From positions 10,907,803 to 10,971,802 of the forward strand of contig NC_069000.1 of assembly GCF_001194135.2 (NCBI RefSeq): a stretch of 64,000 nt of DNA. Reading direction: 5' to 3'. A model generated the notes under the pieces. The model had not been told where the DNA came from. It did no database searches and worked only from the letters and a program-made list of their open reading frames with translations. The translations under genes and the position numbers were made by a program. Below, one piece after another: positions 1 through 56,722 of the stretch (positions are counted from its first letter, which is position 1; the number at the start of each line of letters is the position of its first letter). This DNA is from Octopus bimaculoides (taxonomy: Eukaryota).

Positions 1-905
1 TATGCATTCCTTCTGGGGTTTTTTGTTTTAGACATGTGGACACACATACATACACACACACACACATTCCTCCGGTTCACCTTCTCTTGACACCTCTCCT
101 AATGTCATCACTTTCTCTACTATATTCTCCCTTAGTCAAGGCAACCTCACTAGTGCTGGTGTCACACAAAAGGCCTGCACTTCACTCAGTGAAACAGCAA
201 ACTGAGCAGAGACAGTGTAAGGTTATGCGGACTCTTTGTCCACGTAGAAGGCTGGACAACTTCTATACAGTTAATGCCAAAAAAAATTTTTTTAATGCAC
301 CCAGTACACTCTGTAGAGTGGTTGGTGTTAGAAAGGGCATCCAGCTGTAGAAATCTTGTCAGAATTGGGATTGTGTGTCTTGGGAGGGCCGTTATGCCAA
401 TAATATTAAACACACACACACAGATTCGATATCACTTCTTTATTGTTAGTCAGTTGAGTAATTCCATTACCTTGAATTACAAAGTTATGAACAGAAAGTT
501 TATCATTGTGCTTTTTCATTAAAAACGCTGCATGTGACACATGTAGAAATGGCTGCTTCAGGCTCATATGAATATATTTATGTGTGTATGTATGTGTGTG
601 TGTGTGTGTGTAATATATGTGTCGAGAGTTGTATCTGTCTAGCAAGTAACTTGATCTGAGACGGTGAGTACTAAAAGTAAAGTAATTACATTGTGGATGA
701 GCCATTCTAGCCATCTAATTACGCACAAATCTGTTAAAAAAATATGCGCTTTACATTTAATACGACATTTGTTATACAACTGTGTCAGGGACCTGGTTGA
801 AATTGTGTAATTGAAAATCTTAATGCCTTATCAAATTTCAAGTAAATTTAACAATTTTTGTGCATTAAAGGGCTGGAATGGTTTTGGAATAATTTAATTG
901 TCTCA

Positions 906-948
<43 letters not shown>

Positions 949-1269
949 GGATAGATAGAGAGAGCTGTCATTATTTGACATTTACCATCTATTTTCTTCG
1001 CTGGCATGGGTTTGACGGTTTGATAGGAGCTGGTAAACCAGAGTGCTTCATTCCTTGGAGCACCAAAAGAAAAGCATGCATCGTGGTATTTGTTCCAGCT
1101 GTTTGCATTCTAAGTTCAAATCTTACTCTGGTTAACTTTGCTTTTCATCCTTTTGGGGTCAATTGAATAAAGTACCAATCAAATATTGGATCGATGGTAT
1201 CGACTACCCCTCCCTTTTCTCAAATTTACTAGCCTTGTGCCAAAATTAGAAAGAATTATCATCGTCATA

Positions 1270-1427
1270 GGTGCAGGAGTGGCTGTGTGGTAAGTAGCTT
1301 GCTTACCAACTACATGGTTCCAGGTTCAGTCCCACTGCGTGGTACTTTGGGCAGGTGTCTTCTACTATAGCCTCGGGCCGACCAAAGCCTTGTGAGTGGA
1401 TTTGGTAGACGGAAACTGAAAGAAGCC

Positions 1428-50962: not shown

Positions 50963-53900
50963 ATGATCAGTTATAACAAAGAAATATTGAAAGAAGAAGC
51001 TAAGAAAGCCAGGCAGGCCCAAGTTATGCAGGCGATCCAGTCACGAACCACATCGACTCCTAAATCCAACTCAATGCTGTTCAGCGAGCCTGTACGTGTT
51101 TCTTCCAACCCTAAAAACCATTCTGTCATGCACCAGACTATCAACAAAGTCCTTGGAAACTACGACGAGGTCGTCGAAGAAATGTCCAAGCAACCAGGTC
51201 ACATGATCGGCATTGACAAGCAGACCCGCTCGACAAGAGAAACCAACCACCAAGCCAAAACTTCGAAATTGCGATGTAATGGCTACAAAATGCGTCCGCA
51301 GGCTAGTTCCAAGGGGATGATAGGGAAAGATGATACTCCTCGGAGTCAAGATGCATCTAGTCATGGGCGTTGCAGCGGAAGCAATAGTGGCAGCGGTGGC
51401 TGCAGTGGTAATAGTTCTGCTTCCTACCTTGGTCATGGCCATGGGCACCAAGATGGTTCTAGACAAGGACTCCTTGAAACACCTCCAGATGGTGCTTATA
51501 GTCGTAATTCTCAGAACTCTCATTCAATGTCGAAAGACAGTGGTCACGGACAAAACTCGATAGACAATAACTATCGAAGCCGGACTTCTCAAAATTCTCG
51601 ATTGTCTACTTCATCAAGAATGTTGTCCGAGAAGCATGGACCTGACAAGGACTTCCATCCTAAAAAACACTCATATTCTTCACAAAATTCTTTCATCAAC
51701 CCCAATAACAAACTATACACTTCGTCCTCCTCCTCCTCATCATCCACACAACTCAGTAAGCACCCCCCTTATCCAACTACCAACTCTGGCAATGCACACG
51801 TGAAACCCAATCGGCCCCTATCTTCTTTAAGTGACAAAAGCTCATCACATGGCAGTAATAGTGAGAAATATTATCGTGACAAGTACCATTCTGGGGGTGA
51901 GAAATCTTTGCAAGTGGACAAGTTTCATAGTAGTGCTGACAAGACCCATGCTGACCATAAACAGTATAGTGATAAGACACACAATGAAAGCAAAGAACTT
52001 TCTAGTAATGTTGATACCAGTGAGAAAAGCCTCTCCAATAACAGTGGTAGGGAGAAGTCATATTCTGCTGAGAAAGGAATTTCACATCATTTGACCAAAA
52101 CCAAGTCAAGATCCCCAATGCCCTCTCTAACACCCAGTGTACAGTCTCAACAACAGGGTCCCCCATTATTACAGTCTCAACAACAACAGCCTCACCTTCA
52201 ACTACAACAGCCATCAAAGGGACCAGCAGCACCACCTTCTGCTATTGCTTCCACACCTCCCCCTCCTTCTCTCAATATGGATGGTTCTCGAGAGAATCAT
52301 CACACCTCGTTGCCCTCATCATTGTCACCTGCATACATTGCAACGAATACCGTTTCAAGCAAGCCATCCATGCCGACACATCTGAACAAAGGCTTATCAA
52401 ACTCTCTAAAAGTCAAAATTATTGGCTCAAATCCGGCAAAGCTCTCCAGTGATCTTGATGACAGCGAATCAAATAACCAGCACACACAGATTGAGAAAAT
52501 TATGAAAGAAATGTGTCAGCCAGAGAAAATAACGGGTATAAAAACACCGAGCGTGAAAGAGAACCTGGATGAAGAGAACAGCTTCCTTTCACCGTTGGGG
52601 CAAAGCCATAAACACCTGCTGTCCGAATTAAAACATCAGAAACCTTTAACACCTGTACATCAAACAAAGTTAAAAGCTATTTCACCATCTTTAACTCTCC
52701 ACCGTTACCAAAAGCAGAATTTAAACACATCACCAGTGCTGTCTGATCTCAAAGAAGAGAAAAATGACCTGGATAAAATTTTAGCCGAGATGACCTGTCC
52801 CGAGTCTCCAGTTACAGCCATTTCTACACCGGAGAAAATGTCAGAAAATCCATTTGCTCGGTCTTTCAAGAATTCCCATTCACCTTCCCAAAAGACTTTT
52901 GGACTCTCTGACAGTGACAGTGATTCCTTTGATAATGAAGAGGATGCAACACAACCCCCTAATGATAAACCAGTCCACAGTTGTTCATCTGATGAGAACA
53001 CCAATAACCAAGCAGATGCCAGCATCCTCAAAGAATCTAAAAACATGACCCTGGCTGCTGCAGAAATTAAGAACCATCAAAACACAGATTCTGTAGGCGA
53101 GAACCAACCATTAAAGACAAGTCCACTTGAATCAACTTCTCCAACAGCTATGCCTGTCTTCCCCTTAAATGCTGTGAAACGTTCCTTACAGAGTCAAGAA
53201 GATCTTTCCCAAGACCTTCAGATGAGTGATTCAGACAGCGAAGCACTCGAGTCTACCAAAGAATTCCCCCCCGTGTTTACTCTCTCAAAGTCATCACCGT
53301 CCAGTCCTATCTCACGCCTACATCATTCCATGGATATCGGTGCAGTGGAAACCAGAAAGGAGTCAGTAGGCTTTGATATTTTCAGTGAACATCCAACAAG
53401 TGAAAGTGATTCTGAGAGTGATGATGTTGTAGGTAAAACAAAGTCCAGTACGTTGACTGTCAACAACTCAGCTGTTGCAGAATCTAATACTGTCTGTAAT
53501 AATACGCCATTAGTTTACTCAACACCAGCTAGGAAAGGATCGGGCCAGTTTGCTAAGAAAAATGATAATGATGCTGATGATGAAGAGGAGGAGGATGGAG
53601 ATGACGATGAAGATGATGATCAAAGTGATGTCGAAGAAAGCAATGAGCTGGATAGAATAGGCCCAGCGGTCAAGCATCAGAAACCAGATGTGGTCTCTTC
53701 AAGTTCAACTAGCGACTCAGAAACTGATGATGATGAGTCGAACGTCTCAGAAAAAGCATCTAGTGCATCAGATGACGACGATGATAACGACGAAGAGGAA
53801 GAAGACGAAGATAAAGACGATCATTCAAAGCAGCTCAACTCAGTGGACGGGGTCAATGATGCGGAACAGTGCGATTCTGCAAGTGTTCAAAAGACACCAC

Positions 53901-56722
53901 GCTGGTGTCTGCGAGCATTCTTTTCTTTGCCAAACAGTGGCAACAAAGCAAATCAGGTCCCCAAAGAAGCCGAGGAAATTGTATCCGTCTCTAGCCATAC
54001 TGGAAGCAACGTCAGTGCAAGCCAAAGAAGCAGAAACAACAGCAGCAGCAGCAGTAGTAGTAATAGTGGTAGTAGTAGTAGTAGCAGTAGCGGTAGCAGC
54101 AGCTGCAATGAGAACAGCAGTCCAATCACTGAAGCGAACAGTCATTGCGAATCTGATGATGACAGCAACAGTGAAAAGTCATCTGCAGAGGAGAAAATCT
54201 CAATAATACCAAGTGATAATGAAGACCCAGCTAGCAGCTGCCATAAACAAGATGTTACCAGTGCCCCACCATTTACTGAGGACATCTCATCAAAGGAAAA
54301 CAGTTTGCTGGCCAATACTAAATCTGTGACAAATCTCTTGACGTGGCCACCTGGCAAAGACATCCAAGAGTTTCCATCTCCTGTATCTTCCCCGATGTCT
54401 GCATCACCTACATTAGTTCATAGAAAACTGAAACGTAAAATTTCACTTCCCATTTGTATTAATACCAATTTGCTGTCCTCCATTCCAAATGTTAAACGCC
54501 GCAAACTCTCAAATGAACCGTCCCAGCCCGCCGAGCACCTGGATACCATCAAATCTGAAACAGTCCTGAACACTTGGTCAAATCAAATGCAATCCCAAGA
54601 GTCTGTTGAGAAACAGTCTGAAAACAAGCAACCCTGGATAAAGCGAGACAAAAGTCCAAGACGAACACCAAATAATACTGAATCTAATTGTTGCCAAAAA
54701 CGCTCTTTGACCATCAAAATCAATACAGATCTTCTGCATTTCATCCCTGCAAAATGCTTAAAAGACATGCCATTATTACAAGATGTTAAAACAGAAAACT
54801 GTATCGAGGAAGCTGTGGTCAAGCCTGAAATGCAGAATGGTAATATTTCTCCTTCGGTTAAAGTAAGTGAACCCAATGCAAACACCGAAAGTTTTGTCAT
54901 GACACAGACTACAACGACACCTGTGCTGACGGAGAGTACACCTTGCAAAGTAGAAAAATCTGATTTTAAATTCCGGATCCCAAAGAGAAACCTCGACTCT
55001 GAGAGCTATGACATCAGTCGACCCAGTCCAAAAATGATCAAAACCGAGGGACAAATTTCAAAGAATGAAGATAACCAGTTGCCAAATATTTCCAAGAGTG
55101 AATCTGTGAAAAGTTTGTCTTTGGTCAACAGTGACAATAACCACAGTTCTCCTTCAACTGAGTCTTCAACTGCTACCAGCAAAACCAGAATTTCTGATAA
55201 AGATAAACAGATTTCTTCCATAGATGATACCAAACAACCATGCCATGACAAAGAGAAGGACAATGCTGTGCTACCTGCATCTCCATCTGAATGTAATAGC
55301 AGTGGTTGTAGTACAAGTAGTAGCAGTAGTAATAGCAATAACAACAACAACAACAATGGTGATGATGACATCGACGACGATGGTGATGACAGCAACAGTG
55401 ATAGTGAGCATGATGACAGTGATCACAATGACCATGTTGATAATGAAAATGTTAAGAAGCATAACAACAGCAATGGTAATAATCAAAGTGTCAATGCTTT
55501 AACTAACTCGTCCAGCAATAAAAAGCTTAAAACAGCAACCCAGGCAAACTTGACATCAAAAAGCTCATCGGATAATTCCAAAGACACCGGGAAACCGGTT
55601 GCAACACCGTCTCCATCAAGGCAGTCTAACTCTTCTTCTGCCTTGTTGTCACCGAAGGGGTCGACGTCAAGCAATGCAGCTGACCACCACCACCACCATC
55701 AGCAGCAGCCCTCGACGTCTGCTATTAGTATGATCCCAGTCACCCCCAGCTACAGCAACAGTTCAAATAGCCTACGTAACAGGCCATTATACAAGAGTAG
55801 TAGTTCTAACCACCACAGCAGCAGTGATGGTGGCTGCAGCCATAAGGGTAAAGAAAAGGCTGCTGACCACTTTTTCCAAGAAGCCAAACGTATGAAACAC
55901 GAAGGAAACAAATTAACCGACATCTTTGAGAAATCTTTCTTGTATATGAATGCTGTGGTGTCCTATGTACAGTGCGGTATAGCATTAGAAAAAGATCAGG
56001 AACAGCGATGTTTTCGCATGTTTGGTGAGATTTTTGACTTTCTCAATCAAATCGGACACTACCACCAGTACCCTCACGAACCGCAAATCTCACTGTTGCG
56101 TTTGCTGTTGATGTCTCGTGTTTGCAAAAAGCTCTACGACATGAAGAAAAAGGTTGCCGACAACCTCAAGCTGGCCATTGATGAATACAACAAGCAGTCT
56201 AGTAGCACTTCCTTGCCATCTCACACCCCATCCCCGCATCGGCCTAACTGGAACACTTCCACGCCTTCATCACGATCAACCCCTTCACCATCAGGCAGCA
56301 TTGACTCAATACGTTCACAAGGAAGTAATGCTTCAGATGCAAGACTAACGCCTTCAGCTTCATCGTCAAATGCTGTTTCAGCAACATCACACTCCTCCTC
56401 CCATATCTCTAACAACTCTACTTCATCCTCTTCTTCCTCCAACCCAAACTCTTCGAGCCTTACGGGTTCGTCTTTGCCCTCCTCGTCACAGACTGTTACT
56501 ATTCCTAAAAGAATTCATTCCATCACACAGAACTACATAGAAATATTAGATTATATTGTGAAGACTCACAATTACTGGGAACAGGCTGAAAATCAGAAAG
56601 AAAGTTGCAAAGACTTTATTGATCTCCTGCACACTAGATGTAATTACATCTCATTGCAAAGCAGTATTTTTCAATATGTGGAATACGTAAGAGTTGGTCT
56701 CCAAATTCTCCGAGAATCATGA
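50963..56722 (+). CDS. AFF4: AF4/FMR2-family transcription elongation scaffold (lilliputian / AFF1-4 co-ortholog), 1919 aa, single coding exon
   Basis: 5760-nt open frame with a good start context (gaaccATGa). The N-terminal LFSEPVRV...INKVLGNYDEV...MIGIDK matches the AFF cyclin T1/P-TEFb-binding segment (human AFF4 recalled as LFAEPYKV...IQSMLGNYDEM...LVAIPK). The C-terminal ADHFFQEAKRMKH...LYMNAVVSYVQCG...VTIPKRIH...YWEQAE...LQSSIFQYVEYVRVGLQILR matches the AFF C-terminal homology domain. The middle is Ser/Asp/Glu/Asn-rich and predicted disordered. The family call is strong; the paralog name is nominal because invertebrates usually have one AFF gene. Confidence 0.95.
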   Translation: MISYNKEILKEEAKKARQAQVMQAIQSRTTSTPKSNSMLFSEPVRVSSNPKNHSVMHQTINKVLGNYDEVVEEMSKQPGHMIGIDKQTRSTRETNHQAKTSKLRCNGYKMRPQASSKGMIGKDDTPRSQDASSHGRCSGSNSGSGGCSGNSSASYLGHGHGHQDGSRQGLLETPPDGAYSRNSQNSHSMSKDSGHGQNSIDNNYRSRTSQNSRLSTSSRMLSEKHGPDKDFHPKKHSYSSQNSFINPNNKLYTSSSSSSSSTQLSKHPPYPTTNSGNAHVKPNRPLSSLSDKSSSHGSNSEKYYRDKYHSGGEKSLQVDKFHSSADKTHADHKQYSDKTHNESKELSSNVDTSEKSLSNNSGREKSYSAEKGISHHLTKTKSRSPMPSLTPSVQSQQQGPPLLQSQQQQPHLQLQQPSKGPAAPPSAIASTPPPPSLNMDGSRENHHTSLPSSLSPAYIATNTVSSKPSMPTHLNKGLSNSLKVKIIGSNPAKLSSDLDDSESNNQHTQIEKIMKEMCQPEKITGIKTPSVKENLDEENSFLSPLGQSHKHLLSELKHQKPLTPVHQTKLKAISPSLTLHRYQKQNLNTSPVLSDLKEEKNDLDKILAEMTCPESPVTAISTPEKMSENPFARSFKNSHSPSQKTFGLSDSDSDSFDNEEDATQPPNDKPVHSCSSDENTNNQADASILKESKNMTLAAAEIKNHQNTDSVGENQPLKTSPLESTSPTAMPVFPLNAVKRSLQSQEDLSQDLQMSDSDSEALESTKEFPPVFTLSKSSPSSPISRLHHSMDIGAVETRKESVGFDIFSEHPTSESDSESDDVVGKTKSSTLTVNNSAVAESNTVCNNTPLVYSTPARKGSGQFAKKNDNDADDEEEEDGDDDEDDDQSDVEESNELDRIGPAVKHQKPDVVSSSSTSDSETDDDESNVSEKASSASDDDDDNDEEEEDEDKDDHSKQLNSVDGVNDAEQCDSASVQKTPRWCLRAFFSLPNSGNKANQVPKEAEEIVSVSSHTGSNVSASQRSRNNSSSSSSSNSGSSSSSSSGSSSCNENSSPITEANSHCESDDDSNSEKSSAEEKISIIPSDNEDPASSCHKQDVTSAPPFTEDISSKENSLLANTKSVTNLLTWPPGKDIQEFPSPVSSPMSASPTLVHRKLKRKISLPICINTNLLSSIPNVKRRKLSNEPSQPAEHLDTIKSETVLNTWSNQMQSQESVEKQSENKQPWIKRDKSPRRTPNNTESNCCQKRSLTIKINTDLLHFIPAKCLKDMPLLQDVKTENCIEEAVVKPEMQNGNISPSVKVSEPNANTESFVMTQTTTTPVLTESTPCKVEKSDFKFRIPKRNLDSESYDISRPSPKMIKTEGQISKNEDNQLPNISKSESVKSLSLVNSDNNHSSPSTESSTATSKTRISDKDKQISSIDDTKQPCHDKEKDNAVLPASPSECNSSGCSTSSSSSNSNNNNNNNGDDDIDDDGDDSNSDSEHDDSDHNDHVDNENVKKHNNSNGNNQSVNALTNSSSNKKLKTATQANLTSKSSSDNSKDTGKPVATPSPSRQSNSSSALLSPKGSTSSNAADHHHHHQQQPSTSAISMIPVTPSYSNSSNSLRNRPLYKSSSSNHHSSSDGGCSHKGKEKAADHFFQEAKRMKHEGNKLTDIFEKSFLYMNAVVSYVQCGIALEKDQEQRCFRMFGEIFDFLNQIGHYHQYPHEPQISLLRLLLMSRVCKKLYDMKKKVADNLKLAIDEYNKQSSSTSLPSHTPSPHRPNWNTSTPSSRSTPSPSGSIDSIRSQGSNASDARLTPSASSSNAVSATSHSSSHISNNSTSSSSSSNPNSSSLTGSSLPSSSQTVTIPKRIHSITQNYIEILDYIVKTHNYWEQAENQKESCKDFIDLLHTRCNYISLQSSIFQYVEYVRVGLQILRES

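Follow-up and report, generated by a model that had tools for sequence, protein, structure and literature searches.

Can a single AFF scaffold carry two docking sites for ELL? The question is raised by a 64,000-nt stretch of the Octopus bimaculoides genome (contig NC_069000.1, positions 10,907,803 to 10,971,802 of the forward strand; hereafter the window), which contains a gene of the AFF/lilli family. AFF proteins are flexible scaffolds, and the short motifs that they carry set nearly all of their function. Work in human and fly has led to the accepted picture of a scaffold on which P-TEFb, ELL and AF9/ENL each have one docking site. A reading of the letters alone (the sequence-only reading) had pointed to two tandem segments of the octopus protein that resemble the ELL-binding motif of human AFF4, the ELLBow. 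Translation of 52490-52831 (+) reproduces both peptides exactly, and the separation of 93 amino acids (aa) given for them is correct from start to start (aa 510 versus aa 603); the disordered spacer left between the copies is about 70 residues long. The upstream copy is called motif 1 and the downstream copy motif 2 below (Table 1). The comparisons described here indicate that both are ELLBow-type motifs and that motif 1 is probably a second site for ELL.

Its domains and its nearest relative identify the open reading frame (ORF) that encodes both motifs as the octopus AFF/lilli ortholog, a scaffold of the super elongation complex (SEC), in line with the AFF assignment of the sequence-only reading. 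The protein matches the family model of the C-terminal homology domain (CHD; Pfam PF18876, AFF4_CHD, E=7e-35, 121 bits versus a cutoff of 24), and its C-terminal ~290 aa match the crystal structures of the AFF4 CHD in a search of PDB sequences (6kn5, 6k7p and 6r80, E about 5e-22). The nearest database protein is the O. vulgaris 'AF4/FMR2 family member lilli', 92% identical over the full length. At the other end, the segment LFSEP...LGNYDE was aligned by BLASTP with the N-terminal end of Chanos AFF2 (E=4e-6). PF05110, the Pfam model of the N-terminal AF-4 region, gave no match at E<=1, which leaves this homology at the level of a motif. We take the segment to be the equivalent of the P-TEFb-binding N-terminus of vertebrate AFFs.

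The human ELLBow is known in detail. PDB 5JW9 shows it bound to the C-terminal occludin-like domain of ELL2; it covers AFF4 residues 301-351, and the ELL2-binding core had originally been mapped to 318-337 (Qi et al. 2017, PMC5290273). Its helix alpha1 (315-324) buries V316, I319, L320 and M323, and is followed by a central W327/polyproline cluster, by a joint formed by L331, T332 and I334, and by a second hydrophobic segment (P342, F345, F347). Affinity for ELL2 falls more than 25-fold with I319D/L320D and likewise with M323D, about 20-fold with L331D and about 8-fold with I334D; losses are milder with W327D (4-fold), with Pro-to-Gly changes at 328-329 (3-fold), with P342D (3-fold) and with F345D/F347D (less than 2-fold) (PMC5290273).

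To score each octopus copy, a family profile hidden Markov model was built from the ELLBow region of 44 unique single-copy sequences, the two-motif (cephalopod) proteins being excluded. In the window protein, motif 2 scored 30.1 bits and motif 1 15.4 bits. Two other proteins carry both motifs, the O. vulgaris ortholog and P0005, a 1770-aa protein colinear with the octopus AFF; over all three, scores ranged from 11.4 (O. vulgaris) to 21.5 bits for motif 1 and from 30 to 33 bits for motif 2. Among the non-cephalopod AFF proteins (144,069 residues), the best-scoring second hit reached 0.9 bits. A profile made only of motif 1 (two octopuses and P0005) was then compared with the 177,635 distinct sequences of the PDB, and its top match was 5jw9_A, the AFF4 peptide in complex with ELL2 (E=8.1e-4, 22.5 bits). 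The motif-2 profile also had 5jw9_A as top match in the same set (E=4.1e-3), with an alignment extending to the PF of the tail. Searched as single peptides against the PDB, motif 2 matched 5jw9_A weakly (E=0.67) and motif 1 retrieved no ELLBow match. Both segments are thus ELLBow-like, and the possibility that only one of them would align to the family did not materialize.

The two copies were also compared position by position with 39 unique non-cephalopod ELLBows. Both retain the equivalents of the near-invariant I319, E322, M323, T332, I334, T336 and P337. The helix positions 316/319/320/323 are occupied by I, I, M, M in motif 1 and by L, I, L, M in motif 2; the extended segment reads I-T-G-I-K-T-P in motif 1 and V-T-A-I-S-T-P in motif 2, and position 331 is hydrophobic in both. 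The linkers, of 5-6 residues, lie in the natural range of 5-7 and each contain a single Pro, short of a polyproline segment. The Trp327/polyproline cluster appears to be an elaboration of vertebrates and not something that the family needs. Downstream of the core, motif 2 has a conserved PF (NPF/VPF/PPF) aligned with the KFPF of AFF4, without the F-x-F pattern; such a PF/aromatic tail is kept in some form by 41 of 50 other unique ELLBows. As the C-terminal aromatic segment is lacking from motif 1, this copy corresponds, on sequence grounds, to AFF4 316-337: a core or minimal ELLBow and not the full 50-residue element. An AlphaFold2 model of aa 480-666 was otherwise of low confidence, as expected of a disordered region. 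Its sole secondary structure consists of two helices located at two local maxima of the predicted local distance difference test (pLDDT), one in the N-terminal half of each motif.

Could such a pair arise by chance? The degenerate pattern spanning both peptides, [ILVM][DE]x[ILVM][LM]xEM-x(3-9)-[ILV]T[AGS]IxTP, has a chance expectation of about 1e-9 for this composition, and none of 20,000 shuffles contained a match. A chance origin of motif 1 was rejected on these shuffles, the family profile, the PDB profile match and the second-hit background. As a mere self-repeat the pair is unremarkable, so its significance rests on the match of each copy to the family motif and on conservation.

Conservation was assessed at two distances. 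Between octopus and P0005, identity is 60% in motif 1 and 67% in motif 2, compared with 23% in the spacer and 29% in the whole disordered middle. Of the 38 aligned columns 15 are invariant, and every ELL-contact anchor is among them. P0005 is itself backed by two further full-length sequences, different from it by 1-2 residues, each carrying both motifs. Between O. vulgaris and the window, the 20 codons of motif 1 show no change at all; four of the five residues just upstream of it (504-508) differ, as do eight residues of the spacer directly downstream. Motif 2 shows 4 synonymous and no amino-acid differences between the same two species. From this pattern of substitution, both copies are under purifying selection.

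To see which copy is the canonical one, the 150 residues ahead of the ELLBow were compared by eye across 17 taxa. In other invertebrates a 'PPNG[IV]...LPKLxI' block precedes the single ELLBow, and the human sequence reads 'RPMDGQ...LTKLKIP'. In octopus, 'SPLGQ...TKLKAIS', likely the equivalent of this block to judge by its letters, sits between the two motifs. This placement of the block identifies motif 2 as the positional ortholog of the single ELLBow of other animals, with motif 1 as an additional copy upstream of the block. No degenerate half-motif was seen in the 150 upstream residues of other molluscs. A further trait is common to both copies: the equivalent of E318 is K or R in all four cephalopod copies compared, a state absent from the 39 other unique ELLBows. 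A derivation of motif 1 from motif 2 would account for it, as would an adaptation of both to one partner surface; neither is proved by it.

The distribution of the second copy was estimated in a sample gathered by the C-terminal domain only (HMMER search of 1.84 billion cluster representatives, best 150 of 217 hits). Counting hits of at least 10 bits on the single-copy profile, two ELLBows were found in 3 of 152 AFF proteins (window protein, O. vulgaris and P0005), one in 70, and none in 79, many of which are fragments. Single-copy proteins come from bivalves (Argopecten, Solemya, Saccostrea, Mactra, Sinanodonta), gastropods (Patella, Lottia, two Haliotis species, Babylonia), nemerteans (Lineus, Tubulanus), an annelid (Owenia), chelicerates (Limulus, Ornithodoros), four insect species and, among deuterostome invertebrates, a crinoid, a hemichordate and amphioxus. 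Chanos AFF2 is the vertebrate member identified by name, and many more representatives with a vertebrate-type motif also belong here; the sampled vertebrate-type proteins have a single copy, in agreement with the one segment that the sequence-only reading had given for human AFF1/AFF4. A duplication general to invertebrates or to molluscs was rejected: all other sampled invertebrate AFFs, including those of ten other molluscs, have one copy.

P0005 comes, like the related P0004 (a fragment) and P0006, from read-archive or metagenome assemblies. In a neighbour-joining tree of the C-terminal domain the three form the sister group of the octopuses; their domain is 63% identical to that of octopus versus about 30-35% to those of bivalves and gastropods. 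They are most likely decapodiform cephalopods, an assignment that comes from the tree. No named squid, cuttlefish or Nautilus ortholog was found, which reflects the limits of the search and is not evidence of absence; in this sample, the gain of motif 1 can be dated only to before the octopus/P0005 split. Two metagenome scans yielded no confirmed locus, and one of them did not recover even the contig of P0006. P0006 is a compact 690-aa 'mini-AFF' encoded by a single ORF (L003 3132-5204, a contig of JGI metagenome 3300023220) and composed of the N-terminal homology segment, one motif-2-type ELLBow and the C-terminal domain. Relative to P0005 it is devoid of aa 94-498 (with motif 1), 659-1218 (with both AF9-type look-alikes considered below) and 1299-1467. 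P0006 may be an ortholog that was shortened, or else a processed paralog; upstream of it, the contig carries an ORF for a reverse transcriptase (RVT_1).

Set against the ELLBow of human AFF4/AFF1 (5JW9), the octopus copies share the amphipathic helix with an acidic residue at 317 and E322, a short Pro-containing linker, and the equivalent of the L331-T332-x-I334-x-T336-P337 strand; motif 2 also agrees with it in position, coming after the TKLK block. They differ in being two per chain instead of one, in having no W327, in a linker shorter by 1-2 residues and in K/R instead of E at 318. Motif 1 moreover has neither the hairpin return nor the F345/F347 segment, of which motif 2 keeps only the PF remnant. 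A second group for comparison consists of single-ELLBow invertebrate proteins such as those of Lottia (V3ZQR7), Patella (XP_050416187), Argopecten (XP_069130959), Lineus (XP_064636190), Limulus (XP_013775321) and insect lilli. They have the same architecture as the octopus protein (N-terminal segment, block-preceded ELLBow, C-terminal homology domain), and their ELLBows resemble the octopus copies, with no W327 and 5-6 residue linkers. These proteins have one ELLBow, with a second hit of at most 0.9 bits, in 1060-1651 aa (those named) versus 1919 aa in octopus, and are ordinary genome annotations with multiple isoforms, whereas the octopus coding sequence is one uninterrupted ORF. As to multiplied docking motifs, work attributed to Kuntimaddi et al. 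in 2015 reportedly found several AF9/ENL AHD-binding motifs in one disordered region of DOT1L. The analogy lies in the same elongation/leukaemia network and in a multiplied docking motif that tunes recruitment; motif, partner and protein are different.

The explanation that we consider best, and somewhat probable given the sequence comparisons, is that the octopus AFF has two ELLBow-type motifs and that motif 1 acts as a functional second ELL-docking site, making the scaffold bivalent for ELL. The disordered middle of the protein carries two ELLBow-type short linear motifs. The core of motif 1, an amphipathic helix and then an [ILV]-T-x-I-x-T-P strand, covers the minimal ELL2-binding region (AFF4 318-337). 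Most likely, each copy would fold against the concave side of the occludin-like domain at the C-terminus of ELL. Such a scaffold might hold two ELL/EAF modules simultaneously, or a single ELL with a higher effective affinity through rebinding. The anchors that cost most affinity when mutated in AFF4 are kept in both copies, and double ELL docking is plausible; that motif 1 binds ELL, and that the stoichiometry changes, are inferences. A number of observations weigh against this explanation. Motif 1 scores below motif 2 on the family profile (15 versus 30 bits). W327 is missing from both copies, as it is in 20 of 50 unique ELLBows, and motif 1 lacks the conserved aromatic tail (equivalent of F345/F347) in the octopuses as in P0005. 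The QPEK linker and the IKTP of motif 1 are peculiar to it, conserved between octopus and P0005 and systematically unlike motif 2, and could reflect another mode of binding or another partner. Taken simply as an internal repeat, the pair does not stand out (best ungapped 16-mer 33 versus a mean of 37.5 for the best shuffled pairs), nor are the flanks of the two copies significantly alike (p about 0.2), so that a duplication origin of motif 1 is no more than inferred. A longer segmentally duplicated unit around both copies was rejected for the same lack of significant flank similarity. The sole non-octopus sequence with two motifs, P0005, is placed in its taxon by the tree only. Finally, P0006 does without motif 1, which is therefore dispensable in at least one context.

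What else could motif 1 be? It might bind ELL, as motif 2 does, with only one ELL held at a time (allovalency or rebinding), so that affinity or dwell time would go up and stoichiometry would stay the same; we regard this as possible, though clearly short of an even chance. Tandem short linear motifs in disordered scaffolds commonly work via avidity or rebinding, and the copies are just about 70 disordered residues apart. The AFF C-terminal domain, according to PMC7026398 and to PDB 6r80, already dimerises, which would provide ELL multivalency without a second site. On the other hand, 70 residues appear long enough for two occludin-like domains of ~120 residues, given the dimensions in PMC5290273, and nothing in the sequence forbids double occupancy. 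A functional motif 1 that is not a second ELL site is rather unlikely in our estimation. It would bind another occludin/ELL-domain protein or another partner, or be a regulatory pseudo-site, either as an intramolecular competitor or as a proline-directed phosphorylation (TP) module tuning the occupancy of motif 2; these pseudo-site variants share in that low estimate. The conserved QPEK and IKTP, the absent distal tail and the lower profile score speak for a role of this kind. They have to be set against the retention in motif 1 of all the residues that dominate human ELL2 affinity, against the ELL2-bound AFF4 peptide as top PDB match of the motif-1-only profile, and against the derived K/R318 common to both motifs; the motif also has no known alternative partner. 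Lastly, it is improbable that motif 1 is left over from an old segmental duplication as a relic without function or in decay, conserved only incidentally. True, the conservation is backed by just three independent sequences (two octopus species and P0005), the compact P0006 lacks the motif, and the comparison between octopuses has low power, with 0 changes in 20 codons where about 3 of any kind were expected. Yet the relic is disfavoured by the pattern of conservation: the identity of motif 1 across the octopus/P0005 split is far above that of spacer and disordered middle, the invariant columns include every contact anchor, amino-acid changes abut it on both sides with none inside, and a helix is predicted exactly there.

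Table 1. Coordinates of the AFF/lilli gene and of the segments discussed (nucleotide positions in the window; residues of the encoded protein)
Feature	Nucleotides	Residues	Strand	Basis
AFF/lilli coding sequence, complete	50963..56722	1919 aa + stop	+	Single unbroken ORF (ORF list)
N-terminal homology segment, LFSEPVRV...LGNYDEVVEE	51077..51220		+	BLASTP vs Chanos AFF2 N-terminus, E=4e-6; conservation island vs P0005
Predicted helix, N-terminal half of motif 1, QHTQIEKIMKEM	52478..52513	506-517	+	AlphaFold2, local pLDDT maximum 69; corresponds to ELLBow alpha1 (AFF4 315-324)
Motif 1, extra ELLBow-like copy, IEKIMKEMCQPEKITGIKTP	52490..52549	510-529	+	Family profile, motif-1 profile vs PDB, conservation
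Spacer landmark SPLGQ	52589-52603		+	By-eye comparison, 17 taxa
Spacer landmark TKLKAIS	52664-52684		+	By-eye comparison, 17 taxa
Predicted helix, N-terminal half of motif 2, NDLDKILAEM	52763..52792	601-610	+	AlphaFold2, local pLDDT maximum 64
Motif 2, canonical-position ELLBow, LDKILAEMTCPESPVTAISTP	52769..52855 with conserved tail EKMSENPF	603-623; tail to 631	+	Family profile, PDB, conservation
Conservation island, unassigned, FPLNAVKRSLQSQEDLSQDLQMSDSDSEALES	53159-53254	733-764	+	Octopus vs P0005
AF9/ENL AHD-docking look-alike, LPICINTNLLSSIP	54446-54487	1162-1175	+	By eye and regular expression
AF9/ENL AHD-docking look-alike, LTIKINTDLLHFIP	54707-54748	1249-1262	+	By eye and regular expression
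Conservation island, unassigned, KVEKSDFKFRIPKRNLDSESYDIS	54947-55018	1329-1352	+	Octopus vs P0005
C-terminal homology domain (dimerisation domain), Ser-rich insertion inside	55850..56719		+	Pfam PF18876; PDB 6kn5, 6k7p, 6r80

The disordered middle also contains two segments, 87 aa apart, that look like AF9/ENL AHD-docking motifs. They were picked by eye and by regular expression; in human AFF4 the AF9/ENL AHD-binding motif is LIVKIDLNLLTRIP. KRK/KRRK basic clusters flank LPICINTNLLSSIP; both look-alikes are present in O. vulgaris, and P0005 has two similar segments, LLPISINLDLLSSPP and VIVKIDVKLMNLMP. Limpets have one AF9/ENL-type segment, VVVKINLSLL. On a profile of 62 non-cephalopod AF9/ENL-type instances the octopus look-alikes scored at most 2.3 bits, within background, and PDB searches with them returned no relevant matches. 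Only the first, LPICINTNLLSSIP, is a conservation island versus P0005 (62% versus 25% identity), and the ungapped score of the pair, about 29 by hand, is at chance level compared with shuffles. A doubled AF9/ENL-type motif thus finds no support in the family profile, the PDB searches or the pair score. If real, the look-alikes would be a second partner-docking motif doubled in the same lineage. P0119, a Logan sequence, is the only other representative with two AF9/ENL-type profile hits (SLIVRIPLNLIK, aa 1231-1241, and NLIVRIPLSKLKRIPQ, aa 1325-1341); from this protein, docking motifs may have been doubled elsewhere in the AFF family.

Across the 64 kb of the window, no long real ORF other than the AFF gene is present. 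Its O. vulgaris counterpart, of 1912 aa, is likewise a single uninterrupted ORF (L001 10001-15739). Vertebrate AFF genes have about 20 exons. The intronless 5.8 kb coding sequence suggests an ancient retrogene origin or a wholesale loss of introns in the lineage. Two further stretches of the disordered middle conserved between octopus and P0005 have no function assigned to them (Table 1, conservation islands). Elsewhere in the window, N runs (assembly gaps) at ~2.4-3.0, 4.2-4.9, 6.0-6.3, 31.2-31.7 and 34.1-35.1 kb give X-filled pseudo-ORFs and often adjoin TA/(TATA)n-type simple repeats.

A broader reading, which goes beyond a second ELL site and which we hold only tentatively, is that the SEC scaffold of coleoid cephalopods was re-engineered in cis. 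A single long AFF gene without introns would provide two functional sites for ELL docking, and perhaps also two of AF9/ENL type, one scaffold recruiting two ELL/EAF modules or two different ELL-domain partners; vertebrates multiplied AFF genes, with one ELLBow each.

Searches of the literature on ELLBow/AFF4/ELL2, on the cephalopod SEC and on the evolution of ELL-binding motifs returned no description of a tandem ELLBow, and none was found in full-text literature, in line with what the sequence-only reading had presumed of its novelty. The gain of short motifs in disordered scaffolds is known; what is new is a tandem, conserved ELLBow pair that is lineage-restricted within the sample. Should motif 1 not bind ELL, the finding would come down to one more conserved motif specific to a lineage. 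Two peptides allow a test in vitro, since the motif is short and both a binding assay and the ELL2 domain of human are at hand. Motif 1 would be a clean, datable case of a disordered region gaining a short linear motif. If it is a conserved second site for ELL, it would be a natural experiment in scaffold valency: it would test whether the copy number or dwell time of ELL on the SEC can be tuned, and would bear on ideas of multivalency and of condensate formation by the SEC. A cephalopod SEC with two ELLs would, in that case, have a stoichiometry not described in any animal.

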